In this document: in pieces, positions 26,968 through 64,000 of the stretch
How positions within the stretch are numbered: the stretch's first letter is position 1
Layout: every line of letters begins with the position of its first letter
Assembly (NCBI RefSeq): GCF_000150275.1
Contig: NW_002060948.1
Coordinates: 3,361,183-3,425,182 of the forward strand
Source of the DNA: Trichoplax adhaerens
Taxonomy: Eukaryota; Animalia; Placozoa
DNA: 64,000 nucleotides
Direction of reading: 5' to 3'
Program-made: the position numbers and the translations under genes
The notes under the pieces: model-generated
Databases searched by the model: none
The model's input: only the letters and a program-made list of their open reading frames with translations
Told to the model about the DNA's origin: nothing

Positions 26968-27089
26968 TTTGATTGCTAACCCAAGGATTCTGGGCACTGG
27001 GCAAGCGCAATAACAAATATGGGGGAAAAGACGCAGCTTACCAAGCCATTTTTTCTCTCCACGCCATGATGATTTATACCTGCTATTCG

Positions 27090-35678: not shown

Positions 35679-38600
35679 CTAGACAGCAGTTTCAACAGAT
35701 AGCGGACCTTCGCGATGCTCATCATGGTGGCGTCTGTTATCATTATGATGGTGATGATGCCCAGTTCGATGATGGTGATGTCGGTTGTGGTGGTGCGAAT
35801 GGTGATGATGATGATGATGATGATGACCACGATGTTTGCGTCCTTGTTCATCATCGCTCTCTGATTCAGAACTGCTAGTACTACTTTCGCTACTGCTGGA
35901 ATCTATTGCAACTGGAGTGTGATGCAATAATTTAGGACCCATTAATACAATAAGAGCTGCTCCTAAAGGGGCTGTGATTAAGATACTTAAAACTGCAATG
36001 GTTAAAATAACGTTCCCACGACGAAGGTCATCAGGATCATTGCCCCTTAATCTAGCAGTATCCAGGGCAATAGATCCAATAGCTGCCTGAACTGTTGCTT
36101 TAGGTAGCCAAGCAATTGCTACGAACAATTTCTCTTTCCATGCAAGATCGTTATGTGATACACCAATGTAGGTAACTACGACCCTAATTGCTAATCCAGC
36201 AGATAACACAGCGAAACCTATTCAAAACAACAGTAGTAGTAATTAACTTAAAAACGATGGACTTTAAATCACATCTAGTAATCGGCAATTGGTATGATAT
36301 ATTTTATAGGTAATATTGCACATGAACAACAACGGTTAACAATGTATGTGCTTGTGAAAAAAATCGAGTCAGGGCCGAGGAGATTTGTTATTCTTGTATG
36401 GTACACAGACAGTATAGGTTCTTATCGTTATAGATCATGCTAAATACAATTTTTAAACTTACTTCCTCCAATAATACTACCAGTAAGAAAATTAATATCA
36501 ACTTCAGCTCCAATTAGACCAAAGAGAATTGGCTGAAATAATTGCCATAGAATGTCAATGCTATGTTCAACTGTTTCTTTAGTAGTTCTCCATTGCATAG
36601 CAGCTACAAAAGAGCAAACTAAAGCTGCCAGAGCACCTGCACCTGTTAAAATATTTCATATTGTAAAGCATATCATTAATAATCAATCAAACAGTCGATA
36701 AATTGAAGTAAACTGTTCTATCTACATTCGTAGTATGATCAAACGCTAAATTAAATTGTTCCATTTGATACTGTTCCTACCTGAAAATTCTACAGCACGA
36801 CTACCAAATATAAATAAGTTATTAAGACTCAGCAATAACACAAATCGATTTCGTGATACGCCATCTTCATCATTGTTAGGGAAGAACCAACAGACTATAC
36901 CGGCTACTACACCGAAAGCAATTCCTACTAATATCTCCACCGGACCACGAAATATGTTAAATATGATGTCGCCTGTCAGTCAATCATAAAGAGAAACTTA
37001 ACCATGTCGTTGGATAACCTTACGCGCATATTAAAATTATTGAAATAGTCCACACTCTCTACTACCAATTCTATCATATAATTTTTTTTTACACATTTAC
37101 TGTAGCTTCGATAAAGACGTGCAATTTAACTACGGTACCTGTAGAAAAAGCGATACCAAGGAAAACTCCAAAGCCACTGATGGCAAAAACATCATCGATC
37201 GATGCTGCGGCAATAACCAATGTGGGAATCCCCTTATTGACACCATAACCGCGTTCTTGTAGTGATAATAAAGTCGGAATGACTACAGCAGGTGAAACTG
37301 CAGCCATAACAAATCTAAACAGTATTACAGTTACAAATTAATTGTGATATACGCGTCAATTATATATGTATATCGCTCTAGATATTCAACTATTGCATAG
37401 GATCGGAAATTACCCTAGCATAATTCCCCAAAGCCACGGTAAATCCATCACGTATCGAGCAACAATTGCATCTACTACAGTTTCGCATATGCAAGGAAGG
37501 AATGCAACACGTAAAACAGTAAATTTTTGATGGATTAGAGCTTTCCAGTCCAAACCTAAAATACACGAAAGTAATGTTGGAAAGGAAAGTATTAAAATAT
37601 TACTCAACCAGTAATTGCAATTTAGCAAGCTAGTCTTTATTTGATACTGAATGCATTACTTTACGACGTAAAATTTATAATTATTTCAATAACATCCAAT
37701 GGATATACTATACTGTATACAGTATCCAGGGGAGGAGCTGTGTTACGACTGAAAATTCTCAAATAGCAAAATAGTGCTAGGTTATTTTTGACTGATTGAT
37801 TGATTTGTGCCGATAGCCTTTTTTAGAATACGGGGATTGTTTATACTGATATGAAGCAAGAATAGTAATGTCATGTACGGCGGTATGATGTAGAAATGTT
37901 TAGTATGTGTAGAATACGATAATTCAATTGCCAAGCAATCGCTTATACGTGGTTAAATAAAGCATCATCCAATTCAGCAATAGGTCAATAAATGATGATT
38001 GTATATCAAATTACACAACAACTGCTATCTAGCAATCAATATCGAGAACTAATATCGTCTAATTTCAGCAAATAAAATACAGTTCAAAGTAAAGTTGGAT
38101 GTCTATCGTACTGTATGTCGTAGAGTGTGTCATGGCATAAAAAACTGGATCAATGCCAGCACGTTAGTAAATAATGGTATGTAAGCTTTTAGAATCGTTG
38201 GCCATACTGAAAACAATTTAAAACTACAGGATACCGAGAAAGGAATGTAGAAAACTATGCGGATTGAATATGGATACTGTATATTGAGATTTAAAATAGT
38301 TTTAGTATACGCAGCTCATTTAGACTGCCTGAACAGGATGGCTAAGAAATGATACCACTCTCGTGAAATATTAAACAACATGTTCAACTGCTGCATTCAG
38401 CAAAGGAATTGCGAGCAATTATGTGTACTGTACTTTAGAATGATAACAACAGTTATTATTACTGCAATAATGAATCAATTACAGTATTGTATAGTCAATT
38501 ATACTTTACTTTTCTCTTTTACAGCCGTATACTGCATGGATAGAATTCTAGCTAAAACAAGAATATGCATATACTGTACGCTAACTAGTGCTAAACGATG

Positions 38601-41583
38601 CATTCCTTCAATTTTGTATAATTTTCTCTTGTACTCAAAATTATTTTAGGCATGTACCGCATTTACAGAATCTTTCACTACAACAGAATAGTCTTTCTTC
38701 CACTAAGAATTATAGTCTCATACAGTAGAAAACTACAGTATTGTAGTAGAAATCAGAGTTGGATTGCATCTTCAATTTTGGATTATATGTAAGCGATAAA
38801 GCAAATCAGCCAATAAATAATAGAGTAAAGTACTGTACATTCATTCAGTTCGATCACATTCTAATCGACAGTGCAGCGTTAATTTATCCACGCTTGTAAA
38901 ATAGTACGTAACAGTAGATAACTTGTTGGTGAAAATCAATCCAAGTAGTAGATATGTATGATCATAAAGCATGAGATGAGTAGAACATCCATCGGATAAG
39001 CACATTACTGTACAATCTTTCATATTATAATTCGGTAAAGGGACTACAGCTTGAAAGGGTAGTTCACAACGATATGCAGTTTACAAAAGAGTCGTTCTAT
39101 TCAACGTGAAGTACTGTATTAGTTTTTTTTTGGACATCTCAACCTCACCCCATGTTTGCGTACAGTTGAACAACATTTACTGACGAAAAATTGGCACACT
39201 CTTTTCTCGATTTGAATGATTTTGTTCAACTTCCATCCCCTTTCATACCATTGGCAGACAATTGGAGTCGCCGATGGAAAATTCACGATGCAATTTTTTT
39301 CCCCTCAGTACGTCTTATCGTGCGGCAAATGGCAATCTCTAGTCATCATTTTCGATGTAACTTGCTCAACCAATAGTAGTAGGAATGTTATTTCCATGGT
39401 ATTTGATTGCGTGTTTACTGATCTGTCTTTAGTAATAGGTAACAATTAAACTGTCTATGCATTGCGCAAAACAGACATTTACTAAATATTGATCTTTTGG
39501 ATTGATATTATTGATCGTCATTATCTATCATTGTCGTCCATAGAGTACCGTATAAAAGAGTCCTAACCAGTAAACGATCGATTGATCATTCTATAATTTA
39601 CATAATTAATCGGTCCAAGCGATTGAATGATTACGCAACGGTATTAACGAATTTTAAAATAAACGTTGCAAGAATAAGAATCCATCTCGATTTTACCAAA
39701 TGAAGCAATGGAAACTATCGTATTGCTGATGAAAGTGAACTGTGTGACAAAAGTTACGATACATTAATTTATGTATTATTCAAGAGTGAAAATTCTGATT
39801 GTGTGTCATGATCTTTGCAGGTAGAGAAAAAAATTGAACAGCATCATCAAATAAGACGAACTACTCGGTTCAAATTGCTCATCGCGATACATGACCTACT
39901 TACTGTATCGTATGTCTTTTAAAAGTGTAAGCAATATTATTGATTGGTATATGGAGTTGATAGTATTGACAAAAGTAGACAAAAAACAAAGTGCGAATAA
40001 AATAGCCGTTTGCCAGTTGCCTGCTATATGAACAAGAAATGGTCAAGGCATTGCCTAGGCGTGAAGTAGGTAGGACGGACATCCTCTAGCCATAATAATA
40101 ATAATTAGAGTACAGTAAATTAGTTGTCAAATTAGTTATCCATTTCTTTTCCAGTGTCATCGATTTACAGCCATGAATACTATGGAGACAGTAGAGTTGG
40201 ATTTTTTGTTGGACTTTCACTGGATTGAGAACAATCTCAAATGTTGTGAAAGTTTGCTTTGCGTCACTTTCACACTCATACTATAGCCTTAGGTCGTTTT
40301 AGGAGCAATTACCAGTTTTTCTCCATTTTTTAATCACCATTATATTCAAGGGATAAGATGAAGATTATTTACTAGCTATCAATCAGTTTATCATCATGTC
40401 CTAAGAATCAAGGGTCAATCAACGATTGGTGTTGATGAGGCCAAAGAAGAGCATGAAAAGTCTGGATAATATTGTATTTAGTGTTGTATAGCATGAAAGG
40501 CCTGGATCATGTTTTATTATCATTGATGAAACCAACAATAAATAGTTTAGAGTTGATGGCATTCAATAGGAACAGAAATAGAATGTTGTAAGGGAAGAGT
40601 TGCTTGACCAACTCATTGATGACACGATCAACATTGCTGATGATGTGACCATCTCTAGCAATTGATGATGCCATGAGATAGATTTGAAAGAAATGTTTTC
40701 TTAATCAAGCAACTCTTGATTGTTGGTCATTAAATGGAGAAAAACAAACATGGATGAAATAGATAGCAAGGAGTTGACTTGACGTCTTAGGACTGCAGTT
40801 GGACATTATTGATCAAGTGAGATAGATGGAAAGAATTGGTTAAGGGGATAAAAAAATGGTAGGAGTGGATGGATGCCTTTGGTTAAGTCATGGTCTATCG
40901 ATCTATTTTACTGTAGTGTACAGCATGTCAACTGTGGAAAGTAGAGTATGAGGGGAAAAAGTGTTTTAGGCCTTGAAATTGTACCATAGTCTTATCCATT
41001 GGATGCTATCAAGAATGTGGATATCATTATCACTGACTGAACGAGGCAGGCGTCCAAGTTGATGAACAACTAGGAGCGAACATATTGGATTATAGAATTA
41101 AGGATAAAAACGATGATGACGCTAATCATCAATGCAGATTATTGATGGATTGGATTAAGGAATATTTTAATTGCATATCATTTGTTGCACTTCAGTCATA
41201 CCTAATCCCGCTCGTGTTAGAATTACGGCTAAAGCCATGGCTCGCAGTGTACCCGACCATTTTGGATCGATACTTTTAGCAACATTAATTGTGGGCGCAT
41301 TACGCAATGTAAAGCCAACCACCAACATGCCAAGCAATGCTGGACCTTTCAATTTGGCTACAATAAATCCACCTAAAGCTGAAGCGGTTATCACCACAAA
41401 TAAGGAGAAGATATTACCACCTGGTAACGCTTCCTTGCCCAAGATAGACCATAATAAGCCATAAGCAATAGCGACTTGTAGAATTCGTGTTAAGATACGA
41501 GCCAATTTTCCCGATGGTGGTGAACAGATCCGATTGCTGCTAATAGAACCGGAGTAGTTTTTATTATCGTTGATTTCAGCCAT
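35679..41583 (-). CDS. SLC9B2: SLC9B/NHA-type cation/proton antiporter (CPA2), 6 exons, with Ser-rich and His-rich C-tail
   Basis: Exons encode ALPGGNIF..LLGMLVVGF..LRAMALAVILTRAGLG|LD..RVAFLPCICE..WGIMLG|FVMAAVSPAVVIP..GYGVNKGIPTLVIAAASIDDVFAISGF|..GPVE..|..QPILFGLIGAEV..|..IAWLPKATVQAAIG..ILITAPLGA. The DD motif is intact. SLC9B1 and SLC9B2 cannot be distinguished; additional 5' exons are not excluded. Confidence 0.93.
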
Positions 41584-41729
41584 TGGATCAATGGATTGAA
41601 TGATGACGACAATGCAAATAATGAATTTTTCCAATTTTTTTTTTTTCCAATCTTGAAGGGTAGTTAGTGTATCAAAGCCACTTTGTCAAGAGAATGATCG
41701 TCTGGTTGTCGATGGAGGGTAATTTTTTG

Positions 41730-41748: not shown

Positions 41749-42813
41749 TAGTATATCTCGACCAAGTTGGCGATAATAGTGATCGGCCAAGGCATGGATG
41801 GTTAGCGGAAAAATGAACGAACCAATATTAATGTTGTGTCGTGTGATGGCAATGTGGACTGTCTTGTTGTGGCCAAAATCGATCACACTGGGGCCTACAA
41901 TGACTTTGGATTATACCTGATCCTTTCGTCTAGTCCACGCGTTATCCAAAGGCATCCAACTCTTCTACTTGAACTCTTTCCTACTAATAATCCTTGCTGC
42001 AATGATGAAAAGCGATCGATTGGACGCTATTGCATCACCAATGGCGAGCAGAAGTAGTGTTGAGAATTGTCATGCTACAGTATGTCCCCCGATCGTCTTT
42101 TGGAGGCGATTTTCTAGTCCAACCACAGGCCAGGCTGGTACCAGTCTGATGCCTGTCAGTCAGGTTAGCGTTGGACACGAGACAGTACAGTAGACGGACG
42201 CATTGTACGCTGGAGTACTGTGGACTGTACACTGTAGAGGGCTACAGTGTACAGTACTGGGCTGGACATTGCCAGTACTGTAGCAGTGTCACTCTCCGTG
42301 CCTGCCAGTCCTGGTACCGGTACTGGTCTTGCTTGGACATGGACTCGACTCTCGTCTTGAAACGTTTGTTGGACTTGTTGAAAAGGCCAGCGAACCAAGA
42401 GTACAGTACTAGAAAGAGTGTATTCAATCCTCGATATGCACTGTACTGGAAGACGATTGGACGCTGTTACCCTACTACTGTACTGTCAACAACAATGAAA
42501 TAGAGTCCGTCTGTCAGGTCTGCTGAGTGAGTAGTTGGTGCCACTGAGTCACCTTTCTTTCAACACAGCAATACAGTGTACGGTACTCACATGACAAGTT
42601 CTCGTACTGTACACTGTACACTGTACAGTAAAAGAGAATACTGTATACGAGAATAGCAAAAGTTGCTTGAATCATTGCTTACCCCCCTCAACTGAGATAT
42701 TGACAATGACACACCGATCATGTTGAAAACATGATGTCAATTGACATACTTTTAGGCGTTTTAGCACTCGCGCAAGACCAATTGACGCAACGTCCAACTC
42801 CATTGTACTATAC

Positions 42814-42885
42814 TGTACAGTACATTGTACAGTACATTGTACAGTACATTGTACAGTACTGTACTGTACTGGACTGTACTGTACA
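42814..42885. repeat. 12-bp tandem (TGTACAGTACAT x ~4) followed by inverted GTACTGTACA-like units
   Basis: Read directly. TGTACAGTAC and GTACTGTACA are reverse complements, giving an imperfect palindrome centred near 42857. Confidence 0.9.
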
Positions 42886-43104
42886 ATGTGCTGCACAATC
42901 GACGTCAACCGAAATCCCTCTCACCACAGCAACTGTAGTGCTTCCATTCAATGAAAATTGTCCCAACGTCTTATCCATGTACCATGGATTCGTCCATTTC
43001 CCCATAGGGGTCCGATATCAGCACACCAGCTCTTCATTCTTCATCATTGATTTCACCCTGGTAGTAGACTGTAACATACTGCTCCAAACCAACTTGGCAA
43101 CATA

Positions 43105-43215
43105 CAGTATTCGCACATCATTTCCATGGCAATCGTCGACCGTCAGCTCACCAGTCACCAGCGCTTCATTCTTCATCAGTATTCGCTCATCATTTCCATG
43201 GCAATCGTCGACCGT
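43105..43215. repeat. 39-bp direct repeat x2 with 72-bp period
   Basis: cagtattcgc(a/t)catcatttccatggcaatcgtcgaccgt at 43105 and 43177; caccagc(t/g)cttcattcttcatca also occurs at ~43025 and ~43156. Confidence 0.9.
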
Positions 43216-43959
43216 ACAGTCCGTCAGGCCTATCTGTAGGTGTACCTGACCACTGGCTACACGCGTCGATACTGGTAGACTGCCGTACACAGAAATAGTG
43301 TTGTTAATTTACTATTAGTAACTACCAAACAAGGATAACCAATCATTCACAAACTTCATCATCATTCTCAAAATGAATTACAATCAATCAATCAATTGAA
43401 TTGATCGAATATCAATACTCACTCCTGTATTGATATATGCATACATTATGGATTGATTGGTTTCTGTCATGAATCGACATTAAAATAGAAAATGAAACTA
43501 CAGTATCTACTATGATGATCAAGCTTTCAATCAAATTTGACTTTGAAACAAACTGTATTGAAAATAAACAACATGCAATCAATTTGAACTCAAGGCATCC
43601 ATTCTTTCCCAATCATCATACTGTACATTGTACAATTGTGATGCATAGCATAACAGCACTACTGACAACCTTAACATTTGTATGTCAGAGATGACAAGAT
43701 AATATTCACGCAGCTTGCTACACTCAAGAATTGACTTTGGAAATGTAACCTATTTGACAATACAATCACTGAGCTAAGGTAACTAAGGTCCATGAAGTCA
43801 TCGATCAAGTGGTATACGATAAAAACTGGACAATAACCAATAGATCGCTAGGCGAGGAGAAAGCAATTTCTTGCAATAACGCTATCTTTCGGTACAGCTG
43901 ACATCAACACACCGATACCCATTCAAATAATGCTTTGAACTATTTTTGAGGCTGACATA

Positions 43960-48186: not shown

Positions 48187-50398
48187 TTATAAATTGCGTA
48201 TAATTTTATCTGACGTCTTTACGTGCATTGAAGCTAATCGATCCACAAAATTTTTTAAGGGCTCGCGTAACTTTTCTCCTTTTCCATCGGCGGATTTGAT
48301 GTTGGAAACTATCGTATCAAATTCCTTCATTACATATTTACTTGCTCCTTCATTTTCTTCGAATTCATAAGCATGTGTGTAGATGCGTGCTGAAATAGAA
48401 AATAATATTTTTGAGTTACTTCAATTACAAAAAAATCTAGCTATCATAACTTGATACTCATGGGTAGGTAAAAGTATAAAGCGACTGTAATTGTACTCTA
48501 AGATTTTGATAGCAAAATTAGAATAGTTTCAATTCATCTTGTGCTTTTTAATGTATAACCTTAACAATTTCCAAATAAGCACCGTAAGTCAAATATCAAT
48601 TTTCGTTACTTAAACTAAAAAATTGGATAATCATTAATTATATCTTACTTGGATCCATTTCTTCGCGGTCTTGCTCCATTCCTTCACCTTCACCTTCTTG
48701 TCCTTCATAACCCTCTTCACCTTCGCCTTCTGGACCTCGTTCACCTTTATATCCTGGTGGTGGTCCTTCTTCTTCTTCTTCGTTTCCTTGTGCTTGTTCT
48801 AACTCAGGTTCCATTTCATCGGTAGTTAATCTATTGATCAGTGACTTTTCATATCGAGTTCTACCTCGCATCCGGATAGCTTCTTTAGCTGATTGCAAAG
48901 TGCCATCAATTAATCCTTTGTATAAGCGGAAATCTTCCATAAAACGATTAACACGAGCTTGATGTTCAGTATTGGCCATCTTGACTGCAAACGAGTATCG
49001 AATGCCTTTGAAATCATGCGCGGGTGGTCTTGCAGAATGTGGTATGGTACCTTGAAAGATCACAACTCGGCCATATCGAGGTCGAACTTCAGTTACAAAT
49101 TCGCTAATATCGGAATTATTAGTCGTGTAAGCAGTTTCACCTCCATAGGAACTTTTCCAGCCAGGATTTAAGTAGAGTAAAAATGTCCATTCATCAGCAA
49201 CATCCGCACAATCTGTATGGATTTGAGTGTGATCAGCACTTCGTATCATATTGCATGCTACATCGTAGGGGTACCATTGATCTTTTCCACTAACATAAGC
49301 AGCAACTTGTTTTTGAATTTGCCAAAAGTAACTCTTGGTATAGGAATCAATATTAAAGCCAGCAATCCATTGAACATTATCAGTACCACTATCGACGGAA
49401 TCATCGTAGTAAAATCGTGCATTCTTGATCGATTGGCGTAATTCTTCCAATTCTTCATTCTTGAAAAGACCGTCAAAGACGAAAATTTTCTTACCGTCGG
49501 GAGTTTCAACTTTTTTAGTCTGATATTTACTGATGTCCAATTTAGGTGCTTCTTTACTCTTATGAGCGGTTACAAAATCAGCGTTACGTGCAGCATTTCT
49601 CTTGGAGTATTTGAGTTTCCATTGATCATGAAATTCCTTCACCTTCTCTTCAGATTTTGTCAATTTAATAGTTAAGAACATTTGACCAAATTTATAATCA
49701 ATAGATGGTGGTTTATGTATGTAAGGGATAGATGCATCAAAGATAATACAACGCGCTAATCGTGGATGGATAGCAGCAGCAACTTCTTCGTCTTGATCAT
49801 AGAATAAGATGTCGCCATAATCATTTTTCTTCCATTTACTTACTAACTGGATAACCATGGTAATGTCTTTCTCTTCCGGAGATGCATCAGTTGAGATAAG
49901 TGGTATATCACCGCGTCGTACCAGTTTAAATGCTGCTTCATAGAAATGATATTTACTTTCAGAAGCATTAAGAAAATGATTAACACCGGCCAAAAGTCTT
50001 TGTCCAACACTTGTTTTCTCAAGTTTAGCAAAATTAATCCTTGTTTTCCATGTTATATGATCTTTGTCTACGGTCTCTGCCTTGATACCATCATTAGGAT
50101 CTTTCAATGTATGTTCCCACTGGCCAAGAGAAACAACATACAAGCGTAGCAGGTAGATATCACTGGGTCTAAGGAAATCATCGTAAACCGAAATTTTCTC
50201 ATCGCTAAGGGTACGAAATGTTTTAGTTAAATGGGCATCGAAGTCAAAATTGCCTGCTGCCGAATATTTAGTATGAGGTTTTTCCTTAGAATGAGATTTT
50301 TTCTTTTGATGATCATATTTCTTCCCTACTACACTATCTTGCCAAAGGGCAAAAACTAGGACGATAGCAACAAGTGATACCGACTTGTGATACCTCAT
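48187..50398 (-). CDS. Secretory tandem-domain Fe(II)/2-oxoglutarate dioxygenase (prolyl-hydroxylase-like fold), paralogue 1, ~650 aa, 2 exons (48649-50398, 48187-48389)
   Basis: Signal peptide MRYHKSVSLVAIVLVFALWQDSVVG. The C-domain has IHTD..WTFLLYLNPGW..YGGET..PRYGRVVIFQGTIPHSARPP..RYSFAVK (HxD..H..RxS); the homologous N-domain has degenerate ligands. A phase-1 intron (GTAAG...TTTCAG) is followed by exon 2 TRIYTHAYEF...IIRNL*. Confidence 0.88.
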
Positions 50399-53300
50399 TC
50401 TTAGTTTTGCAAAAACTGGCTAGTTAATGATATTGATTCAATTTACGGAAATAGATGAGATTAAGGTAGAAAAAGATGAAATTTTTACCAGGAATAGGAA
50501 AGACAGAAAAGAAAGGATTGGCAGTCCCAAGTCGATGACTGTCAAGATTGAAGTCAGTTGAATTAGGAAAATAACCCTTATTCAATAGTAAAATCGCTGC
50601 TCTAAACAAAGATCGCAAGCAACCGCTAGTCACGATCAGTTTTCTATGTATTTAAACTAGCGTTAACATGGGCAGTTCCCAGTGTCATCATTGTTGTAAC
50701 TCCCTCAACAGTCAAGATTTCATTATAATAACTATTTAAGAACGTCGGAGAAATCAATAGACATTTATTTGTATTTGTTCTTGATAATGGAATTTCTCAG
50801 TTATTGTTATGCACAGTCGATAATAGTTTTCAACTCGTCACGTCCACCATCGACTACAGATGAATAATGAATAAATTGAAAGGATATACACTAAAAAAAC
50901 GTTTTACTCCATTAATCCTTATTTCCACGATTAAAATTAGAGATCAATCCGGCTAATATGAGCCTTCAATGGCTAACCAGTTATCCTCTACAATCTATTT
51001 TAGAGACGCTATCCTTGTCGTTACATTGTATGTGCTATCAATCTGAGCAGACTCTTAATCATTATGACAAGAGGTGGAAAATTTTATAAGCAGTAATTTT
51101 CTTTACTAATTCATTCAGTAAAATTGGCGTTACTACGTCAGTAGACGATAGATACATGGCGAAACTGACTTCAAAGAATGCTCACATTCACGGAAACAAA
51201 AACAATCTCTAATGTATTATTTATTCTTTAACAAACATATTCAATTAGTCCATTGCGACTATATTCGATTATGAATGAATGATAGAATTGTATAATAGAT
51301 CAAAAGAGATAATTAGTTACTTTCTACGTAATTCGTCCTGCCAATTTTACCATCATACACATTAAATGAAGACAATCTACGCGTATGAAAATGGTAGAGT
51401 ACGCGTACATCTATACTCTTAATCATGGGTAGCAGTAGGTAGGTTAATATGGAACAAGATATTTAAAGAAAAGCCCTATTTCTTAACCCCTAAATTATTC
51501 CTAACCCTAAACCTTTCTTGAAAAAAAACTTACTATGACAAGAATGGCGATGAATTATTCCAGTCAACACAACCTATAAATACTGTAGTCCTCTTATGGA
51601 ATATCAAGTTGTTATTCATATATTGAATTTCCCTTTCCTGTAATTCAACTATGTTATTAAATTGACTAGTCATTGCTTCTACATGCTAGGCGATAATTTC
51701 TCATTCTGCGTCTGTCTGAATAATAATCTGTATGATAGAATTGGGAATGTAGAATAAAAATAATATTGATTCCATTCAGCTGGCATTGAATTTTCATTCT
51801 ACGCCCCAAGGCATTACGGTGCTTCATATTAACTTCTATCGGAAATTGGGATTGCCATATAGAAATGGACAGAGACCTGTTAAGTAGGTTAATAACAAAA
51901 TAAAAATACATAATAAGTAATGGATTGTTATTTTACCAACAGGGGTTTTAGCTATTGTACCACAGCAGTAATGATTTGATATTCTTCTGCTATTATTTGC
52001 AATAGTGAACCGCCTGACTTGTACTCAGGTGTATATCAGTAAGTCCCGGTAGTATTTTGCCAGTTAAGAATTAATAAGACTTATTAAAGCATGATGCGAT
52101 ATCAGAAAATTCATCATTACCAACTCACTTCCTGCCTTGCGTTGCATAGACGTTAATTTAGGAAACTTCTGTTATGACAATTGCATAATTTGAATGTTTA
52201 GGAGTGTTTGCATTTATTATCTATTAATCCCTATCAAGTAAGTGAAAATATTGCATACTCTGCTGCCCATTCAAGGTATAAATGAATGAAAATCGATTGA
52301 TCTATTACCAGCAATAATAAAGATGAGCCAAAATTATTATTAGTAACGTTTGGCTACCGAGTGTTTATGGAGTCAAGAGGCACCTAGGCAGAATCAATTT
52401 TTGAATAAGATAAATACTCATGTTGCGATGCTTTGTAGCTGCATGCTATATGACTAAAATGGGGTTCAATTTAATCGAAAGGCAGTCAAAATAGTTTACT
52501 GAGATTAATTTTAGTAGTCTAAATTAATGATTTACGCCAAATTTGACGTTAGTTTCTTTGCTGTAGACGTTCATTATTCCATGCAATCTGTTTGGATAGA
52601 TTCGTTCTCAGTCTTCCGGTAATGAAAGCGACTGCAATTAGTTCGCCATAATTTAGCAGATTACAGCAGTTAGTACTGTGTCTATACGTTCATAACTTTG
52701 AAATAACTTTTAAAAATATAAGCCTTGCAATATCAATAGCATAGCTTGCCACTAATTGAATGATCAAATCATGCAAAACATGACTATTGAAGGTAGACTA
52801 ATTACTGCTGAGATTCTTATACATCTTACTTACTCTTTCACTAGTTTTATATGGATCTCCGATAGCAAAGCATTAACTGGATTACTAGCAACCTTTAGCG
52901 AGTCTTGCTCTAGCTTGTAATTTGATTAAATGTCCATTTTGATTTTTAGTAGTATATGTAAAGCAATACTTTGACTACTAGTTGTCTTTACTCTGTCCTG
53001 CCTTAAACTTATATTTAGCATCTGAGCATCCACTGAAATAAACATTTGATATCTCTAACATTAACGACTGAAATGAAATGGTAGCAGCATGATGGCTAAG
53101 ACAAATATCGTAACTATTGATCACCATACCTCTTTCATATCAATATATATTTGCTTATTAGCACCTAAGATCATGAAATGATATCGTTGCTACATGAATT
53201 TAAAACGATATACTCACATGATTTAAGATTTTAATATTAAAATTACAGGAAAAAAAGGAGTTACGGATACACGAAAATTTAAATTATATCTATTTATAAC

Positions 53301-53569
53301 TAAATCACACTACTGCCTCAAATAATTTAAGAATTAATATCAACTAAGAGAAATTATCCATCACAGACATAAAAAATAGAGTTATTTAATACGATGCCCA
53401 TTAAATATTAATTCAAAACGTAACGATGGCCATAATAGGTAGAAATATTAACATATAAGTGACATGGTACAATCCAAATCAAAATATATTAAATACGAGT
53501 TAATTATGACTATATCAGTAGGCAGTTTGTGAATGAAATAAGGATTTATACAACTGCCCATATGTCCGA

Positions 53570-56500
53570 TTATAATTCATCACGATCCCTTCGTGGGTCT
53601 TCGTAATCTTCGTCGGCTTCATCGTCGCCATTTTGGCCTCGATAGCCTTCCTCCTCTTCGTTCTCTGATTCGTCATATCCTCGAGGCCGTTCGCCTTCCT
53701 GGCCAATATCTTCTTCCGATTCCTCATCTATAAACTCGTCATAACCATTATCACCTCCATCTCTACCTTGGAGATAATCTTTATCCGTGACTTCTACCAT
53801 ATCGTCAACCCTATCAGTATCGAATAACTTGAGCAATTTTTCTAAGTTTTCTTTGAGTTCTTTTTTGGTGATAACACCATCATTATCACCATCTAGTACT
53901 GCCATGTTCTAATATTTAGTAAAATAATAACACGCCATGTTATTAAAGTAAATTTTGAAATACAGACTTTTTTCGCCAAGATGATGAATAACAGTAACTG
54001 TAAAATTATCGAAAGAGTGTGCGTCTTAATAAAAATACTACAGATTAAACTAACTTACCTTTTCACCGAACGGGACAGAACCTCTTACTTTCTATTAATA
54101 TAAATAATACGTACAACCGTTATGATTGTAAACAGAGTATAAACATTTGTATTAATCAGATTAAAGGTTTTTAGTGTATAAATCTAAATTGAGATAGAGC
54201 TCAATAGTACCAGATAATTTTTCATAAATAGTTCCTTGTCTAATCCTCCGGTTTTTTTATCGATTGATTTCTTAATTACTCCCCTAAACGAAAGTTAATA
54301 TTACTGATGAATTAAATGTAGTAAAGATTGAGAATAACATTACGAAATATTTACTTTATAAGCCTTCTATCCATATTATAGTATTCAAAATCTTCTCTAT
54401 TTGCAAAATCTGGATCAAGGAATGAGGTGAGGTAAGTCCAATTTTTGAATGATAGCTCCTTAACATCTTTTGACGTGATATAATCCTTGTTTTTAACATC
54501 AAAAAACTCTTCAAACTGGAAATAAGGAAAAAAGACATATCAACGATTAGATCTACACTTGATATAGTGCCTTCTTTTAGCTAATGCTAGTCCATCAGAT
54601 TCCCGTATTAAAATAAAATTTTCATATCTATTTTCTGGATCATGGACTTAAAACAGATAAATAAATTATTTATTACTGCTACAACATTTGTTTAATCCTT
54701 ACAGCTCTTATTTGGATTTTCATACGTCCTGGATTATCTTCCATGATTAGTCCACGCTGATATTTTAAAATTAACAGAAGAATATAAAATTACATGATTG
54801 TATTAGCAGTATTCAGTTAGGAGAAGAAAACATGCCGATTACAAATTGCTATTAATAGATGTTGGGTCTTACTTTTCTAATGTGTTTAATAAAGTTTTTA
54901 GCTTTAACTTTCTTATCTCCTCGAAACGTCCGGATAAATCCATCCCTAACATAGAATAAAGAATCCGATTTTTACTTTGGAAAACAAAACTTTGTCTCTT
55001 ACTTTCAACATTTCATGTACCGTTTTCAGATTCACTTTAAGCACAGTACTAATTATAAGGTGAAGATTTATTGCTCTACAATTTGTAATACAGAAGATTT
55101 CACTAGCCTACCTGATACCCCAAGGACTTGGATTGCCCATGGTCATGGAACCAAAGCCAGGATAATTCCATACGATTTTGGAAGCATCCAATATTTTATA
55201 GTCACGATTTCCATTACATCCAGTATTGTCAAATTTGGGCAAATAAATAAGATTGTAGTCGAGTAACAATGAGTACGCTAAATTTTTCGGTCCAGTTGAA
55301 CGAACTTGATGTAAGTAACCTATCATAAATTATCATTTAAATGATAGTAGAATAGGCAATAATAAGTCATGATAGTCGCCGACGAGATGAGATAATTTCA
55401 ATTGACTAGGATTGAGACTGACAACGTGAAGTATAACAACTAATGGAAAAACTACTACAAATGCTATAAAAAATTAAGGTAAACACTTATGGACGCTACT
55501 ATGCCTTTAGCGATAGTTTAGCTTAATGTGGAACAGATCAATTATAAAAAAGACTTGTCTTTCTGTCTATTTGCTAATTAGCTAGCAGATAGAAAAGCGT
55601 GTAGATACCTGTTGGAATATACAAGCAGTCGCCTGGTGTAACATTTGCATACTGCCATGGTACTTTAGCAAAGTTTGGGTAACGTTCCATATTTACTTTA
55701 TCGACGTTTAACATGGAGAAACCTCCAATTTCAGATTCAGGTTCTTTAGCCATAGGTACATTTTTGATGTGTTTATCACTGATCATGATCCAATCCTTAG
55801 TGCCATTAACGAGGCAATTTAAGGTGTTTACTAGAAAACGTAACCATAGTATAGCTTTAAAATGGATTGTACTATAATAGAAGTAACACCAACTCGTTTA
55901 TGCCTGAAAATTGATGAGAATCTAAAAATGATACCAATCTCAGTGAAACTGTACAATAATATTGAACTGAATGTAGTCAAATTGATATTAGAAAGAATGT
56001 CTAAGTTCCTTGGTAATGCTATATATATATACGGATAGCTGACTGCAATGGCATAAAAAGTTCAATCGTTCTATGAAATATCGTGCTGTACAGTACTTGA
56101 AAGTTGAAGGTAATAAAGGAAGTATACAAGCTTTAAAATGCTAAATAACATCTGCTATCGATTAAAGATTAAGGACAGTTCTATAAAATGACTACCATTT
56201 GATAGATTTACCACTCAATGGGAAGAAATCGAAAAAAAGATATAGCATAATGAATTGAAAAAGTCAAGGGAAAGCTAGCGATAGTTGTTATAGCTAGACT
56301 TACAAGCATCTTTGTGCAATAAGCTACTTGTACCACCATTGCTAACCCATAAATTGGCTTCCATAATTCGATTAGTAAATGAACCGCAAGTTAGATATGG
56401 CGGAACCATAACATCTTTGGCCATGGGATCGGGCAACTGAGAAACGACATAGACATCTCGGGCTTTATACGTATTTAGAAAGTGCCTGATAGAGTCACGT

Positions 56501-56862
56501 CCTAGCCCAACATCACCAACAGGTACGACTTTTTTTTCCAATTTCGATTCTAACTTGACCTGTAAATCGCCAAAATTTTCCAATAAATATTCATCAGTCC
56601 ATTTGGCAATGGCAGGAGATAGTTTAGCAGCACCACGAAAGAGCGCTGGCCTTTTCGCTTTAACATATTTATTAAAAAAATCAGTCGCAGATGGAAGTTC
56701 ATTAGCTTCATAAGTATCAACATGGCCATCGCTATCACGATGATAGCCTAAAGGCTGCATATGACCACGAATAGTTTTCTTCCCATGACAAGGAACTGGA
56801 CTAATGATTGCCAAGGCGGCAATCCAAGCACCAACTATTAAAAATCTATAGCTTATCGACAT
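53570..56862 (-). CDS. ER-lumenal JmjC (cupin-8-type) 2OG hydroxylase with EF-hand(s) and C-terminal RDEL, ~573 aa, 9 exons
   Basis: Signal peptide MSISYRFLIVGAWIAALAIISPVPCHG. JmjC elements: FFNKYVKAKRPALFRG..KWTDEYL, NLWVSNGGTSSLLHKD(A|L)NTLNCLVNGTKDW, VTPGDCLYIPTG|YLHQVRS. Canonical EF loop DGDNDGVITKKE and EF-like DVKNKDYITSKD; acidic tail ending RRDRDEL*. All splice phases are compatible. Confidence 0.9.
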
Positions 56863-58885
56863 TATGTTGATTCTATTCAATATCCGTCGCCAATCTCTCA
56901 CTCTTTATTTTTCTTTTAATCTCTGACTCACTAAGTAGTAAGTAAAGATTAAAAAAATGACTCTAGTAGAATCCTACCGATAGCTATACACTAACTCCCT
57001 ATGACAATAGTTGAATTTTAGTCCAATAAAAAATAAACAGGTATAACGCACAATAATAGCCAGATTAATCATTTTTGCAGCCCATCTCTACCACCTATTG
57101 AATGAATTTGATGCCTTTGTTATTTTTCGACCTTTGTTGCCAAATTTATTAATTGAATAATAGAAATGCAAATCAATTTGAATTCAATTAAGGAACAAGC
57201 CATCGAACGTATTTGGTTTATATTTGTCTATCTAAAATAGATATAGGCGGTATCCTACATCAATATGAAATATGATTTATAGACATTGTCGCAATTTAGA
57301 ATTGAGCCATACTATTCTTATTCATGGCTTTTCGTTACCTAGGGGCGTGATTGATTAATAGACGCGTAAGAATTAATCTTTACGTATATGAGGTTCATTA
57401 AATTCTGTCAGCGTTTTCAATGAGTGGTAGGATTGTCCCTTCTATACTCGATTGATATCGGTTGGATTCTAAGGATACTATGGAAATGATAGACGGAGGC
57501 TATCGTCGTTCTTTCTTATTTAACATAGAAATAAATGAATGGAATGATACTATTATTATAGCTTGCTCAATACGTAAGAAATCAATTTTTTCTATATCCA
57601 TTTGAGTTTGGTTGCTTCAATTCTCGAACAGTTTCGATGAGAGGCGAGCTGCTTCATTCAGTTATATTGGTGGTTTCCACGAGTGATCGGATTGCCCCCT
57701 TCTAGACTTGATTGATTAAATAATTATTACTGTATCGGTTAAAGTTTATTATTTTACTATAGAAATGAGAGTCACAGGCTATTACTCCTCTACTTCATTC
57801 CAATTTTAACACACAAGTTCATAAATAAAACAACGCCATTAACAGGTTGCAGTTGAACGTCAACATCGAAAATTTCTTAAGTTTCCGTCTATGTTGATTT
57901 AATCAAGCAGACGACATTTCTTGTTTGAATACGACTGTTGTGAACTATCATAACTTAATTAATAGTAATGTAAATAGACTGTCGCGATCAATAATTGCTT
58001 TGAAGAGTTTAATAAGTAACGTATTACATCTTTGCCAATAAACAAAGTTTTAGACGTGTATTAATGTCTTGTCGTTATTAACTAATGGGAGTGACTATAA
58101 ACCGTAAATTAATTTGTGATAGCGAAAAATAATTTTAGTACACAGTTTCGATACTGTAATTATTCGTTTCGTTGTGTATTTTTTCATCAGTTCCGCTTCC
58201 GTGGATACCTTCGAAAGAATATTAACCGATACTATAGTAGAGCTTAAAAGTTTCTGTCCTTCCTATTTTTTTAGATCAAATAGGTAGTTATATCCTTAAT
58301 AATCCTGATCGATAAAATAAGATAAAATTTGAGCGAAATTGATTTCATCACTTCCTGAATTATTTCTCGGTGGTTGGATCTGTGACAGATCGAATTGTAA
58401 ACGCTTGCCCGTATTTTTTAGATGAGTTAAGTCGATAACTCTAAGATATGCTATCAGGATTAATTTACTTTCGATAAATAATATGGTGGCATTGAGATTA
58501 TGTTAACACGCAAAAACTTTTGTGGTAGAAACAACTGAACGAGGATACCGAATAGTTCAGTTCATATTAGATGTGAATTTAAGGAGAGAGACTAGATCTG
58601 ACCAATAATAGATTAAAATAAATTTGTTTTGGAATCAGCTATCGGTATGGTGGAAATATACATTCATAATTTCAGCTTTGTAGATTTCATTCAATGAATA
58701 ACCTTTTATTATCTTCCTTATTTGATTTCTAGATGTACACAAGTAAAACAGATCTTATAACGTACGGTAGTTGGTAATGTATTACTCTATTTATGAAATT
58801 TTAAAGATATCAGAGTTATCTTAGGCAAACCATTGGCGACTACAGGATTAACGTTTGCTAACGTTAAACTATCCACTAACATTCG

Positions 58886-60910
58886 CTATAGATATTTACT
58901 TAAAGTTCCTGATAGTTTTTGTAATAAGTTATTTATTTGACGCTCAAAATCATTTTGGATTTTAGCCATGGCTTTGTCATTGGATCTAACTCTATCTATG
59001 CTGTCGATTAGTTCTTGACGTTTCTTGGCAGCTACTTTATTGGACGTTTTTTCTATTTCTTTATGAGGATTGCGATATTGTTCCAATTCGCGTTCTAGAA
59101 TAGTTTAGAAAAATGCTTTACTATTTTTTCAACATGATTGCAAGCTAAACATCTTCATATAAGTAAAATGGGTTGAATAATGAATTTATTAAATAAAAGT
59201 TAGATTGAAATAAAGGATAACCCTTAGTTTAAATTTACCATATTCTGGATCTTGCATGGGTTGATTTTCAAAATTTTCATTATCATCTTCAGACCAGTCC
59301 TGATTGCCCTTTACATTTCGTCGACTGGGCTCATCATCTTCTTCTTCTTCTTTCTCTTTCGACTTTGAAGCAGAAGCAGAACCGACAATAGATCGAAATG
59401 CGATTCTCTCAGTTCTTTCTTCACCCATTTTATAACCAATCTTGATTGCACTGCTAACTTGTTCAACATTTGCAGCATAGGTAGAAAAGTCTTCTGTTAC
59501 TCGATTTACTCTTGCTTGAGCTTCATCTTCTGCCATCTTAACAGCAAACGAGTATCGTATGCCATTATAGCCATTCGCTGGTGGTCTAGCTGAGTGATAA
59601 ATCATCCCCTGAAATATAACACTTCGGCCATAGCGAGGTCTTACTTCAGTAATATATTCATTATCATTGCCTTTTCGTTCAAAGAAAGCGGTTTCTCCAC
59701 CTGATTGTGCTGTCCAATTAGGATTTAGATAGGTTACCATCGTCCATTGATCAGCGACTTGAGCGCAATCATCATGCAAGCGAGTTTTATCGCTAGTTTG
59801 GACTAAATTGCAGGAAACATCATAGGGAAAATAGGTAGTGCGATTGCCAACATGCTTCGCTACTTGTTGATGGATATCCCATAGATGACTATCGATAAAA
59901 TCTTGTAATGAGAATGTTGCCACCCAAGAAACGCCATCACTGCCTTCATCAAATCGATCAGTAAAGACGTAGCGTTTATACTTTACAATTTTTCGTAATT
60001 TTTCTAAGTCGTTTTCGTTGAATAAATTATCTAAAACAAAGATCTTTCTACCATGAGGTCCAACATAGCGTTTAGTAATATACTTTTCTACATCGATGAC
60101 ATTAGAAGTTGAGGTAGTTAACTTGCTCAATGTAGTTTTGCGGCCAACAATTCTATTTTGTGATCTCAATTTCCAATGTTGAACAGCATTCTTGACTTTT
60201 TTAACTGATTTAGTCAGCTTAATTTGTAACGTTTTCATAGCTACGCCATTATCGATCGCTGGAGGTTTATAGAGATGTTCAATGGAAGAATCAAACATGA
60301 TCATTCTATGCATGAGTGGATGGACAGCACCAACAATTTCTTTATTATCATCATAAAATAAAATATCGCCATAATCATTTTTTTTCCAACTGCCAATTAG
60401 ATAGAGTATGGCACTGACATCACCTTCACTATCGGGGGCATCAATAGTACTCTTAGGGATATCGATTCTTCGAATTAATTTAGCAGTCGCATCATAGATG
60501 TGATAGCCATCGCCATCTTGCTGTTCTTTAAAATGGTTGACAGCTCGGATAATTTTTTTCCCGAAACGTGTCTTTTCGATAAATTCTGGATTTAGAAAAG
60601 TTTTCCACATGATATGATCTGGGCTTTCTTCACCAAAATGGCTACCATTACTGTAATCTTCTAACGAATGTTCCCATTGACCATAAATAGACAAATAATT
60701 TCTAATGAGAAAAACACTTGATGAAAGTAGAAAATTATTGTAAACAGAAATTTTTCGATGATCACTTGTGTAGAACGATTTGATTCGATTTTGATCGAAA
60801 TTATCATCATTTAGGGCATTTTTCTTTGATTGAGTTGATTGTTTAGCCCAGCATACAGCCAGAATAAGGCAGGTAACCCATAGGATTAGGTTTGAACATG
60901 AATTAGCCAT
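58886..60910 (-). CDS. Secretory tandem-domain Fe(II)/2OG dioxygenase, paralogue 2, ~626 aa, 2 exons (59239-60910, 58886-59094)
   Basis: Signal peptide MANSCSNLILWVTCLILAVCWA. C-domain LHDD..WTMVTYLNPNW..GGET..PRYGRSVIFQGMIYHSARPP..RYSFAVK. Collinear with paralogue 1, including the single phase-1 intron after the acidic tract; ends TLSKYL*. Confidence 0.88.
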
Positions 60911-61968
60911 TTTGTAGCAATTCTGAACGATTGAAAGAGAAGGAATGTTAATCGTCAGATAAATATCACTTTTACTACTCCAATCAAGAATCTACAGATG
61001 TTGCGTAAGATCGAAGAGCCTAAAGTAAATGTATATATATAATCATCAACTACTCTTGTGATTAAGGAATCAGGTAGAGTTAGTCATTTACACTTTGGAA
61101 TTACTACTAGGAAACTACTACTCTAGTTTCCAGCCAGAGAATTCTTCTTTTAGTTTTCTATCACACAGGCTAACTGGATCACCGATGCTGCTTTAGTTTT
61201 ATTCCAAATAATATATTAACACACAATTGCTGTTACACCTTCAACAACTGTAAATAACAGTTGATTAACAAGCTATGGTAAGAATACATAGTCGCGATCA
61301 TAATTCATGTAGGTAGAAGCTTTCATTCTTATTCATTTTGTAATAGATTATATTTTATAGCTTTACATCATATACAATATAATCTTTTCACAATGAAAAC
61401 AGAATGAGAACTATAGATCTAATTCAATCAGCATTAAGAATTCCATGACGCTGATTAGCAGCAAATAAAAGGAAAGCATTCATTATTATTCAATATTCTG
61501 TTTATGATTTATTGAAATGCTAATATTACCAACTTGGTCGGTATGGTTTAAGCTTGTAAAATAGTCATCTTGTTAATTGAGTTAAAATCAGTTATACCGT
61601 AGAATTGAAACGAATCAATAAAAAAAAGTATTACTATATACATATATCGTTATTGTAGTGTATTTGGATTGTACTGTAACTGTAATCTACTCTTAAATAT
61701 AAATATTTTGTATTGTTATTAAATACAGACACATTTACAGTCTGTTCGCTCTACATTCAAATATGGCTTACTACATTTAGTTATTACAGTCCTCGCTATC
61801 TTCTACAATCATCTGCTATTCTATAACCTGTTATGGTATATGTTGTATCTAATTCTACAATCATGTTCTCTGCATGTATTCTAATGCCATAGCTATAAAT
61901 ACCGATAAAGATATTGGTTGGCTATCGCAAGTAGCGCAGTAGCTACCTAAAAATTATACTATAATCGC

Positions 61969-64000
61969 CTATAAGATTTTAGCAATAGTCTTGCTATGGT
62001 TTATGTGCATATGATTCTTGCGCTTTTCAACTTCCATTTGTAATTTGGCCATAACTTTTACGTCATTTCTAGCTGTATCAATAGCTTTAATCTAGTGCTT
62101 ACGTTCTTTTCACCTTCTTTATTATTCACAGGTGACAATTCACGATGGGCATTTTAGAAGCTCTGAAGTAGCCTTTCATTTCCCGCTAATTTATGAGATA
62201 TTAACATAAATCGATTAACCGCATTGAAAAGTTTTACCGTAATTTGGCACGGAGATTAACTACAGCTAAAATATAAAAGAGCTTTGATTCTCTACTAATT
62301 ATTCGGATTATTAGTACGCATCAATTAGCTATATTGAAAATTTTTTATCATAATTAGATATCCAGTTAAACTACTATTCATCCTATAGTATATGATACTA
62401 AAGTAGAATAGTTATAATGTTATCCTTCCAGTACAATATTAATAAAATTTATTGACACTGCCTCTTTTCTCCTCTTGTATTGCTTTCATATATTCTTTAC
62501 TTAGCTCTTCATGATTCTCTTCTTGTCCTTGATCTTCTTGATTTTCTTGATTTTCTTGATTTTCTTGATTACTTATTTTCATCATCCTTCTCCTCTCCTG
62601 CATCTTCGCCCAATATCATAGATTGAATCATCTTCTCAGATCTTTTGTTGCCGATCCCATTTATTGCCTCTGTTAGTGATTTTCTTCCATCAAATTTCAA
62701 TGCGTAGTTCATAAAATCTTCTGTTAGTCGATTTAGTCTAGCTTGTGCACAAGTTCATCTTCTGCCATCTTAACCGAAAAGGTATATCTTATACCATCGA
62801 AATCATTGGAAGGTGGCCTTACCGAATGAAATACTGTACCTTGGGAAAGAGCACTCTGCCCATAACGTGATCGTACCTCTGTAATATAGTTATTATCATC
62901 ATCAGCACTCTCAAAGTACGCAGTTTCTTCACCCTTTTGTGCAATCCAATTGGGATTTAAATAAGTTACCATCGTCCATTGATCAGTAATCGATAAATAA
63001 TCGCTATGCAATCGTCTATTAACGTTATTTCGAATCATATTACTTGAGACATCATAAGGGAAATAAATATCACGACTACCGACATGATTAACCACCTGCT
63101 GATGAATTTTCCATAAATTGCTATTTGCAAAATCTTGTACAGAGAAAATAGCCATCCATGATACACCGTCACTGCCGTCGTCATGAATATATGTGTAGAA
63201 ATATTCCTTGTATTTCACAAGTTTACGTAATCCTTCCAGTTCTTCAGGAGTAAATAAGTTGTCTAATACATAGATTTTTTTACCATTTTCGCTAACATAT
63301 CGTCGTGTAATATATTTCTCTACATCAATTACTCGATTTGCCGATACAGACGCGATATCATTTAACTTTGTGTTACGAATATTTCTTCGATGTTCAAATT
63401 TTTTCTTATAATATTCGATACCGTTTCGTAACTTTTCACTTGATTTAGTTAATTTAATATGGATTGTTTTGAGAGGATCGTAACGATCTATTGCTGGAGG
63501 CTTATAAAGATGCTCGATTGACGAATCGAACATAACCATTCTAAAGGCAAGAGGATGGACAGCACTGACAATTTCGTTATTATCATCATAGAATACAATA
63601 TCGCCGTAATCATTCTTTTTCCATTTGCCTGTTAAATAGAAGATAGCACTAACATCGTCGTCACGAGATGGAGTATCAGTAGATTTCTTGGGAATTTCAG
63701 ATCTTATAACTAATTTAGCAGCGGCCTGATAAATATGATAGTCGTTACCTTGTTTATCGCCTTAAAATGTTTTACAGCTCTAATAAGTTTTTGACCGATC
63801 TTTGATTTTTCCATAAACTGAGGATCGAGAAATGTTTTCCATAAAATATGATCAGGGCTTTCTTCTTTATAATCGCTACCATTATTATAGTTGTTAAGTG
63901 TCATTTCCCACTGTCCAAGACTGGATAAATATCGTCGGAACAGATAGATACTGAAAGGTTGTGTAAAGTTATTATATATCGAAATTTTTCGATTATCGGA
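61969..64000 (-). pseudogene. Pseudogene of the tandem 2OG dioxygenase family (paralogue 3); 5' end lies beyond the window
   Basis: Homologous to paralogue 2 from SDNRKISIYNNF to a last-exon remnant (IKAIDTARNDVKVMAKLQ..TIAKIL*, TAG 61969-61971). Frameshifts occur at ~63761, ~62750 and ~62575, with further lesions in the last exon, plus substitutions GGET>GEET and PRYGR>SRYGQ. Confidence 0.85.

Follow-up and report, generated by a model that had tools for sequence, protein, structure and literature searches.

We analysed a 64,000-nucleotide stretch of the Trichoplax adhaerens genome (contig NW_002060948.1, positions 3,361,183 to 3,425,182; hereafter "the window"), in which positions 48187-64000 hold four consecutive loci for Fe(II)/2-oxoglutarate (2OG) oxygenases, all on the minus strand. 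The initial annotation had proposed this arrangement, and Pfam supports it for all four loci. Two intact genes and one pseudogene belong to a family of tandem-domain oxygenases resembling prolyl 4-hydroxylases (P4H) and PHD enzymes, for which we coined the name T2OG; between the two intact copies lies a JmjC gene of the endoplasmic reticulum (ER) type which, judging by its sequence, is a member of the HRJD family. The cluster runs beyond the window, with six T2OG and nine ER-type JmjC genes on the same scaffold. Our preferred reading, which we consider probable, is that this neighbourhood of about 100 kb houses two unrelated families of secretory-pathway 2OG oxygenases, each expanded in tandem around an ancient gene-pair linkage, with the roles proposed below. 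The features on which the analysis builds are the following (window positions).

48187..50398, minus strand: T2OG copy 1, intact; exons 50398-48649 and 48389-48187; 650 amino acids

48959..49546, minus strand: predicted catalytic C-terminal double-stranded beta-helix domain of copy 1 (about residues 285-480), with HxD...H and the 2OG-binding Arg; best Pfam stretch at residues 388-470

49649..50251, minus strand: N-terminal pseudo-oxygenase domain of copy 1 (about residues 50-250); first His replaced by Ser, second His by Tyr, Arg lost

53570..56862, minus strand: ER-type JmjC gene (HRJD family), intact; seven exons, 544 amino acids, RDEL end

58886..60910, minus strand: T2OG copy 2, intact; exons 60910-59239 and 59094-58886; 626 amino acids

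62572..64000, minus strand: T2OG copy 3, pseudogene; extends about 160 bases past the window end

The open reading frames (ORFs) 48638-50398(-) and 59189-60910(-) each matched Pfam PF13640 (2OG-FeII_Oxy_3; curated cut-off 27 bits) in two stretches, scoring 59.0 and 59.5 bits, respectively, and the pseudogene piece 62733-63539(-) gave a weak match of 20 bits, below the cut-off. Cupin_8 (JmjC) matches were found in ORFs 56275-56901(-) and 55574-55786(-), while ORF 53570-53905(-), which terminates in RDEL, carried a sub-threshold EF-hand match. Joining the exons of copy 1 at GTAAGA/TTTCAG yielded exactly the annotated protein P0001, and the joined exons of copy 2 yielded exactly P0002, which is identical to TRIADDRAFT_57485. 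In T2OG genes, a large exon covers the predicted signal peptide, the two domains and an acidic stretch, and a small 3' exon encodes a conserved helical end of about 65 amino acids. Copy 1 is accordingly predicted to comprise a signal peptide, a dead N-terminal and a live C-terminal double-stranded beta-helix domain, an acidic linker and a helical C-terminal domain. The acidic tails initially ascribed to all four loci were thus retained for the JmjC protein only, as the acidic stretch of T2OG is a linker followed by the second small exon.

Splicing and frame analysis also bore out the distinction between two intact T2OG genes and a pseudogene. Copy 3 is broken into three frames by tblastn, with two frame changes (at about 63750 and 62754), and its GGET motif and the surroundings of its second iron-binding His show substitutions at sites that its five paralogues keep. 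Its sister in the tree is the intact copy 6 (scaffold offset 75.3-77.0 kb; 12 kb further on), with 78% identity. Typical signal peptides were recognised by inspection and hydropathy at the N-termini of the three intact genes of the window, as had been claimed, and also in the pseudogene, whose start codon and signal peptide lie about 160 bases beyond the window end. Across the whole genome (105.6 Mb, 1414 contigs), six T2OG copies were found, all on the window's scaffold in a single 28-kb run; the three copies beyond the window are intact (L001-L002, window-equivalent 65958-77000).

The residues expected of a 2OG oxygenase are concentrated in the C-terminal half of T2OG, where H394, D396, H454 and R467 were invariant among 43 homologues. 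The N-terminal domain is homologous to the C-terminal one, as indicated by local alignment of the two halves in four species and by tblastn cross-matches, and in all four species the Arg is missing and Tyr occupies the position of the second His; in the two Trichoplax copies examined, Ser has also taken the place of the first His. An AlphaFold2 model of copy 1 (predicted local distance difference test, pLDDT, 83.3; predicted template modelling score, pTM, 0.80) was submitted to Foldseek, and the top PDB matches spanning both domains were Tpa1 and OGFOD1 (probability 1.00). Matches to a single domain were PHD2, bacterial P4H and PolD, the first two at probability 1.00. At the sequence level, a phmmer search of the PDB gave no T2OG relative better than E 0.007 (PolD, a Streptomyces hydroxylase), and when copy 1 was searched against protein clusters, the only matches were generic PF13640 clusters with a single domain, all scoring below 0.9. 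These results support the proposal that the tandem-domain architecture fits no characterised ER enzyme.

Homologues of T2OG were found in sponges, ctenophores, placozoans, cnidarians, echinoderms, a hemichordate, amphioxus and tunicates; the same search returned no vertebrate and no protostome sequence. Those that bear names are labelled "uncharacterized", "hypothetical" or "predicted protein", or carry an automatic domain-based name, and no paper on T2OG came up when the literature was searched by Trichoplax gene name, for OGFOD1-like enzymes of tandem or secreted type, or for invertebrate PF13640 proteins. By its sequences, T2OG is a conserved, so far uncharacterised metazoan family. It is single-copy in most species and its tree tracks the species tree, with one burst within placozoans in which copy 1 is the earliest-branching placozoan copy. 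A hydrophobic N-terminus is present in 54 of the 68 family members. We also observed a distant T2OG-like subfamily (P0038, P0040 and P0043; Acropora palmata LOC141884239 and relatives) of about 545 amino acids with one recognisable PF13640 stretch; its proteins end in VKDEL or VNDEL and so carry an ER retrieval signal of their own, unlike the main T2OG family.

For the JmjC gene of the window, exon 1, the other exons and full-length relatives served as search queries in place of the joined 544-residue protein. With relatives as a guide, seven exons were modelled (56862-56304, 55830-55609, 55319-55112, 54945-54873, 54515-54355, 54283-54211 and 53908-53570), in which all introns are GT-AG, the phases fit and 544 codons run without internal stop from the ATG at 56862 to the RDEL at 53570. 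The encoded protein comprises a putative signal peptide, a GHxxPLGxHR motif, a JmjC domain (H-K-D ... H with the 2OG-binding Asn/Lys), an EF-hand-like region, an acidic tail and RDEL, which fits the KDEL-receptor retrieval pattern [KRHQSA][DENQ]EL. The same plan was found in relatives from a crinoid, a sea star, a sponge, a jellyfish and Trichoplax, and the EF-hand of the Patiria orthologue exceeds the Pfam cut-off (EF-hand_7, 38 bits). Intron 3 of the model contains a 46-nucleotide segment (55048-55003, minus strand) with a good acceptor and a GTAAGA donor, whose peptide (..VNLKTVHEMLK) resembles the HRJD helix ..ELNETIHEM..; it is in frame if swapped for exon 4 (54945-54873), not if added to it, and might represent either a relic or an alternative exon used in a mutually exclusive way.

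A HMMER search of 1.8 billion representative sequences retrieved 888 relatives. Among the matches listed, their range (sponges to tunicates, molluscs and annelids, without vertebrates, insects and nematodes) agrees with that of HRJD, and Phallusia 'Mina53-like 1' was among the matches and groups beside the window's JmjC gene in the tree; this ascidian name is the sole direct bridge to the published HRJD gene list (PMC6390904). The HRJDs were named by Cao et al. 2019 (Genome Biol Evol; PMC6390904) as JmjC-only genes that form a separate clade with KDM8 as the closest human paralogue, occur in highly regenerative phyla and in molluscs, and were lost in vertebrates, arthropods and nematodes. That study counted Ciona "Mina53-like1" as a member and gave 16 copies for T. 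adhaerens (its Table 1); we obtained 24 exon-1 matches in the same genome, in at least four arrays. The initial annotation had suggested an undescribed system, which stood for T2OG, whereas the JmjC half had already been described as HRJD, its ER targeting not being noted there.

Features of a luminal protein were found throughout the HRJDs. The N-terminus is hydrophobic in 68 of the 73 long proteins and in 49 of the 57 short ones; 117 of the 130 reach an N-terminal hydropathy of at least 2.0, and inspection revealed an n-region, a hydrophobic core (14-17 residues) and a c-region of small residues. Nearly all full-length members end in KDEL, HDEL, RDEL, HEEL or HTEL. Signal-like N-termini together with KDEL-type ends in nearly all members examined argue that HRJDs are ER-luminal, an assignment we regard as well supported by these sequence features. 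In 52 relatives, the invariant columns included H177/D179/K192/H257, the JMJD5-type 2OG-binding Asn and Lys, and four Cys. A model of the Trichoplax HRJD paralogue P0086 (pLDDT 82.6) superposed best on JMJD5 (TM-score 0.82-0.85, root-mean-square deviation 2.4-3.0 A), followed by JMJD7, TYW5 and FIH; these closest folds belong to hydroxylases of proteins or tRNA and not to lysine demethylases. JMJD5 was also the best PDB sequence match (E 4e-6 with exon 1, 6e-15 with the full-length relative P0077), while proteins of this family annotated 'JMJD5-like' reached only 70 bits against human JMJD5.

The function proposed in the literature points elsewhere. Cao et al. 2019 proposed histone demethylation, by analogy with other JmjC proteins, in a text that is silent on signal peptides, ER, EF-hands and KDEL (PMC6390904). 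RNA interference (RNAi) against planarian HRJDs led to regeneration failure (PMC6390904; PMC11077316), and HRJDs expressed in flies were cytoplasmic, not nuclear, and acted non-cell-autonomously (PMC11295675). The behaviour in flies fits a secretory-pathway enzyme, and we conclude that the family, described already, was probably misread as chromatin-acting.

The JmjC gene of the window is one of nine ER-type JmjC genes on its scaffold, the other eight lying 38-90 kb beyond the T2OG array (L004-L009, window-equivalent 102000-148000; minus strand for six, plus strand for two). These eight have signal-like starts, acidic tails and HDEL, LDEL, RDEL or HEEL ends; one of them (at about 114.4-115.1 kb) matched exon 1 weakly, with 33-35% identity. 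The interleaved JmjC gene, which the initial annotation held to require a special explanation beyond tandem duplication, therefore stands beside a tandem array of its own family, and that claim was dropped. Between the scaffold's two arrays lie a serine carboxypeptidase gene, a GST/FAX-like gene and a large multi-exon gene. The first (L004:253-1617, plus strand) is a single exon with a Peptidase_S10 match (E 7e-127) and a signal-like start, and the second (L004:3652-4626, plus strand) carries GST_N_4/GST_C_6 domains of the FAX/metaxin-like kind.

Linkage of the two families was also seen outside placozoans, so that the test of conserved linkage proposed at the outset came out positive as far as it was run. 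A scan of metagenome contigs with a T2OG alignment gave 41 loci, among them a stony coral contig of 13.4 kb (L019; 99.8% identical to a second record, L017) on which a T2OG and a JmjC gene start 2.4 kb apart in divergent, head-to-head orientation. The coral T2OG shares 67% identity with that of the coral Oculina, and the JmjC gene has a signal-like start, a GH..FG.HRP motif and intact iron ligands; a protein search with its exon showed this neighbour to be conserved in several corals. On the far side of the coral JmjC gene, an ORF (L019:193-2232, minus strand) looks aldo-keto reductase-like by eye. In addition, contig sizes coincided for the T2OG and HRJD genes of Dendronephthya gigantea (3.5 Mb), Branchiostoma lanceolatum, Strongylocentrotus purpuratus, Patiria miniata and Ptychodera flava, which presumably places both families on one scaffold or chromosome in each of these species; in Styela and Clavelina the contig sizes did not coincide. 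Overall, the neighbourhood looks ancient and is possibly functional, and the most economical history, as we read it, is that T2OG and HRJD became linked long ago and that each family later underwent its own tandem burst in placozoans.

Within our preferred reading, the two enzymes would act as follows. The N-terminal domain of T2OG, having lost its iron and 2OG ligands, may serve as a substrate- or partner-binding module, and the C-terminal domain, which keeps HxD...H and the Arg, would be the catalyst; from its fold family, T2OG would hydroxylate proline or another residue of secretory-pathway proteins. By comparison with JMJD5, JMJD7 and FIH, HRJD would hydroxylate side chains of the Arg, Lys or Asn type in proteins that are luminal or secreted, with calcium sensed through its EF-hands and acidic tail to control it, and would not demethylate histones. 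The analysis shows directly how the genes and their domains are built, which catalytic residues are kept, the copy numbers, the phylogeny and the coral linkage; the compartment of T2OG, the substrates of both enzymes and a cooperation of the two are inferred. The shared compartment of the initial annotation accordingly held in part: secretory features were found in both unrelated families, while a common location in the ER is indirect, since T2OG lacks a KDEL-type end.

Several observations weigh against this reading. No KDEL-type end was found in the main T2OG family, which may therefore exit the ER and act elsewhere, and the loop D-G-D-N-D-G-V-I-T-K-K-E in the last exon of the window's JmjC gene scores only 20 bits against the EF-hand cut-off of 25.9. 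HRJD arrays are present on three other T. adhaerens scaffolds without a T2OG nearby, the coral genes are head-to-head whereas those of Trichoplax are co-oriented, and tunicate T2OG contigs showed no JmjC neighbour within 4-10 kb of flank. In the tree, the coral neighbour, a short HRJD, forms a long branch and falls outside the well-supported EF-hand subclade to which the window's gene belongs, so the linkage is between families and not between strict orthologues. Protostomes have HRJDs, T2OG not being detected in them, so HRJDs in general do not require T2OG. Finally, chromosome sharing in deuterostomes and cnidarians may reflect one ancestral linkage group and not repeated selection.

The alternative explanation that survives best, a real possibility that we nonetheless hold to be on the unlikely side, is that the two families share no function: two independent tandem arrays would occupy one ancestral segment, local duplication or rearrangement would have left one JmjC gene among the T2OG genes, and the substrates would be unrelated. 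The lineage-specific bursts of both families, the unrelated genes between the two main arrays, the HRJD arrays on the three other scaffolds, the retention of HRJDs in protostomes lacking a detected T2OG and the conservation of an ancestral linkage group, which could account for the shared chromosomes, are all in line with it. It is harder to reconcile with the coral adjacency, as a chance occurrence would be expected in roughly 1 in 1000 cases (given about 10 family members in a gene set of about 25,000), and with the taxon range of T2OG and the EF-hand HRJD subclade, which is the same and unusual: neither was found in vertebrates or protostomes among the matches listed. The linkage and this shared range speak for cooperation, and we put the chance that T2OG and HRJD are functionally coupled at low to middling, well short of even. 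A more far-reaching version of our reading, which we judge rather improbable, is an ancient two-enzyme secretory hydroxylation module, made up of T2OG and the EF-hand HRJDs, that was linked before the placozoan-cnidarian split, modifies secreted or matrix proteins, possibly with the KDEL-bearing JmjC protein retaining T2OG, underlies the regeneration and tissue-integrity phenotypes of HRJDs, and was lost as a unit in vertebrates and protostomes.

T2OG might instead leave the cell and work extracellularly, or have small-molecule substrates, with matrix cross-linking, defence chemistry and detoxification as examples, and so not be a protein hydroxylase of the ER. A signal peptide without an ER retrieval motif would suit such a role, as would the rapid lineage-specific gain of copies and the recent pseudogene, which are typical of environment-facing genes, and the nearest PDB sequence match, the Streptomyces hydroxylase PolD (at E 0.007). 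However, Fe(II), 2OG and ascorbate are poorly supplied outside cells, the family is mostly single-copy and tracks the species tree as housekeeping modifiers do, and its fold relatives are mostly protein prolyl hydroxylases; we consider export improbable.

A third possibility, to which we give a poor chance, is an ER complex in which the KDEL-bearing HRJD holds T2OG in the lumen, docking through the helical C-terminal or the dead N-terminal domain, in the manner in which PDI holds collagen P4H-alpha. P4H-alpha/PDI and P3H1/CRTAP/CypB are established ER hydroxylase complexes and provide precedents. T2OG has a conserved helical C-terminal domain and no KDEL, HRJDs nearly always have a KDEL-type end, and the genes are linked, all of which would be expected of such a pair; in contrast, the Acropora subfamily with its own KDEL/NDEL end indicates that retention is possible without a partner, and protostome HRJDs do without T2OG. 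A complex prediction for T2OG copy 1 (residues 44-650) with P0086 (residues 24-400), with alignments unused, scored 0.00 against a mark of 0.34 and was uninformative either way. The proposal that HRJDs are histone demethylases and epigenetic stem-cell regulators, with no compartment in common with T2OG, was put forward by Cao et al. 2019 and is compatible with the planarian RNAi phenotype (PMC6390904; PMC11077316), but appears very unlikely given the family-wide signal-like N-termini, KDEL-type C-termini and invariant cysteines, the nearest structures (JMJD5, JMJD7 and FIH, all protein hydroxylases) and the non-nuclear, non-cell-autonomous action of expressed HRJDs (PMC11295675).

Several features elsewhere in the window were recorded in passing. 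An intronless ORF of 360 amino acids (23904-24986, plus strand) encodes a rhodopsin-family seven-transmembrane receptor domain (7tm_1, E 3e-22), and an ORF at 26623-27105 (minus strand) carries a Complex1_LYR (LYR-motif) domain in a locally GC-richer segment (0.385). Exons at 35679-36209 and 41167-41634 (both minus strand) belong to a multi-pass membrane protein with a weak ZIP-transporter match (E 6e-4, below the cut-off), whose C-terminal exon is marked by long stretches of histidine and by runs of Ser/Asp/Glu. Within the window, GC content is highest (0.418) at 42100-43300, where overlapping open frames on both strands consist of short TVQY/YSTVQ-like repeats; repeats of this kind reappear shortly beyond the JmjC array (L009, about 3740-4200; window-equivalent 148.7-149.2 kb), and the region is probably a repeat element or minisatellite.

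To our knowledge, the list of enzymes for hydroxylation in the animal secretory pathway is short, comprising collagen P4H, P3H, PLOD, ASPH, P4HTM and JMJD8. The locus points to two further, putatively luminal oxygenase families, kept by most invertebrate phyla and without vertebrate members among the matches listed. HRJDs have been promoted as chromatin-acting "regeneration genes", whereas their signal-like N-termini and KDEL-type ends argue for protein modification in the ER; if they act there, the interpretation of the planarian and fly phenotypes would need to be redirected. The conserved adjacency of T2OG and HRJD also offers a concrete candidate partnership.

Compared to known systems, the JmjC domain of HRJD is most similar in sequence and structure to the arginyl and lysyl C3-hydroxylases JMJD5/KDM8 and JMJD7, respectively, with the iron triad and the 2OG-binding Asn/Lys kept. 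Identity to these enzymes is 18-20% (E 1e-6 to 1e-15) and HRJDs form a separate clade (PMC6390904), on which grounds orthology of the window's JmjC gene with JMJD5 was rejected. JMJD5 and JMJD7 are moreover nuclear or cytosolic and, unlike HRJD, have no signal peptide, EF-hands or KDEL. Comparable to HRJD are JMJD8, ASPH and P4HTM, 2OG oxygenases resident in the vertebrate ER that face the lumen and bear either a signal sequence or an anchor. EF-hands occur in P4HTM too, and acidic luminal regions that bind calcium are encoded at the ASPH locus; ASPH and P4HTM have other catalytic folds or belong to other subfamilies. We know of no description of a KDEL end or EF-hands in JMJD8, and the JMJD8 name was absent among the 120 JmjC relatives listed.

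T2OG shares its fold, the HxD...H motif, the 2OG-binding Arg and PF13640 with PHD/EGLN and with prolyl 4-hydroxylases (collagen P4H-alpha, P4HTM and bacterial or viral P4H), of which P4HTM and collagen P4H work in the ER lumen. It differs from them in having a tandem pseudo-domain in place of a TPR domain, a peptide-substrate-binding domain or a transmembrane anchor. The closest architectural parallel is given by OGFOD1/Tpa1/Ofd1, prolyl 3-hydroxylases of the ribosomal protein uS12, which likewise combine one live and one dead double-stranded beta-helix domain. However, the polarity is reversed, with the live domain N-terminal in OGFOD1/Tpa1 and C-terminal in T2OG, structural identity is 10-13% with TM-scores of 0.2-0.3, and T2OG additionally has a predicted signal peptide, a linker of acidic residues and, at its C-terminus, a helical domain. 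Membership of T2OG in the OGFOD1/Tpa1 family was rejected because of the reversed domain order, the lack of an OGFOD1/Tpa1 match in the phmmer search of the PDB, the low structural identity and the prevalence of hydrophobic N-termini, OGFOD1/Tpa1 proteins being cytosolic or nuclear and devoid of a signal peptide. As the two halves of T2OG are each other's closest relatives, its tandem architecture points to an internal duplication that arose independently.

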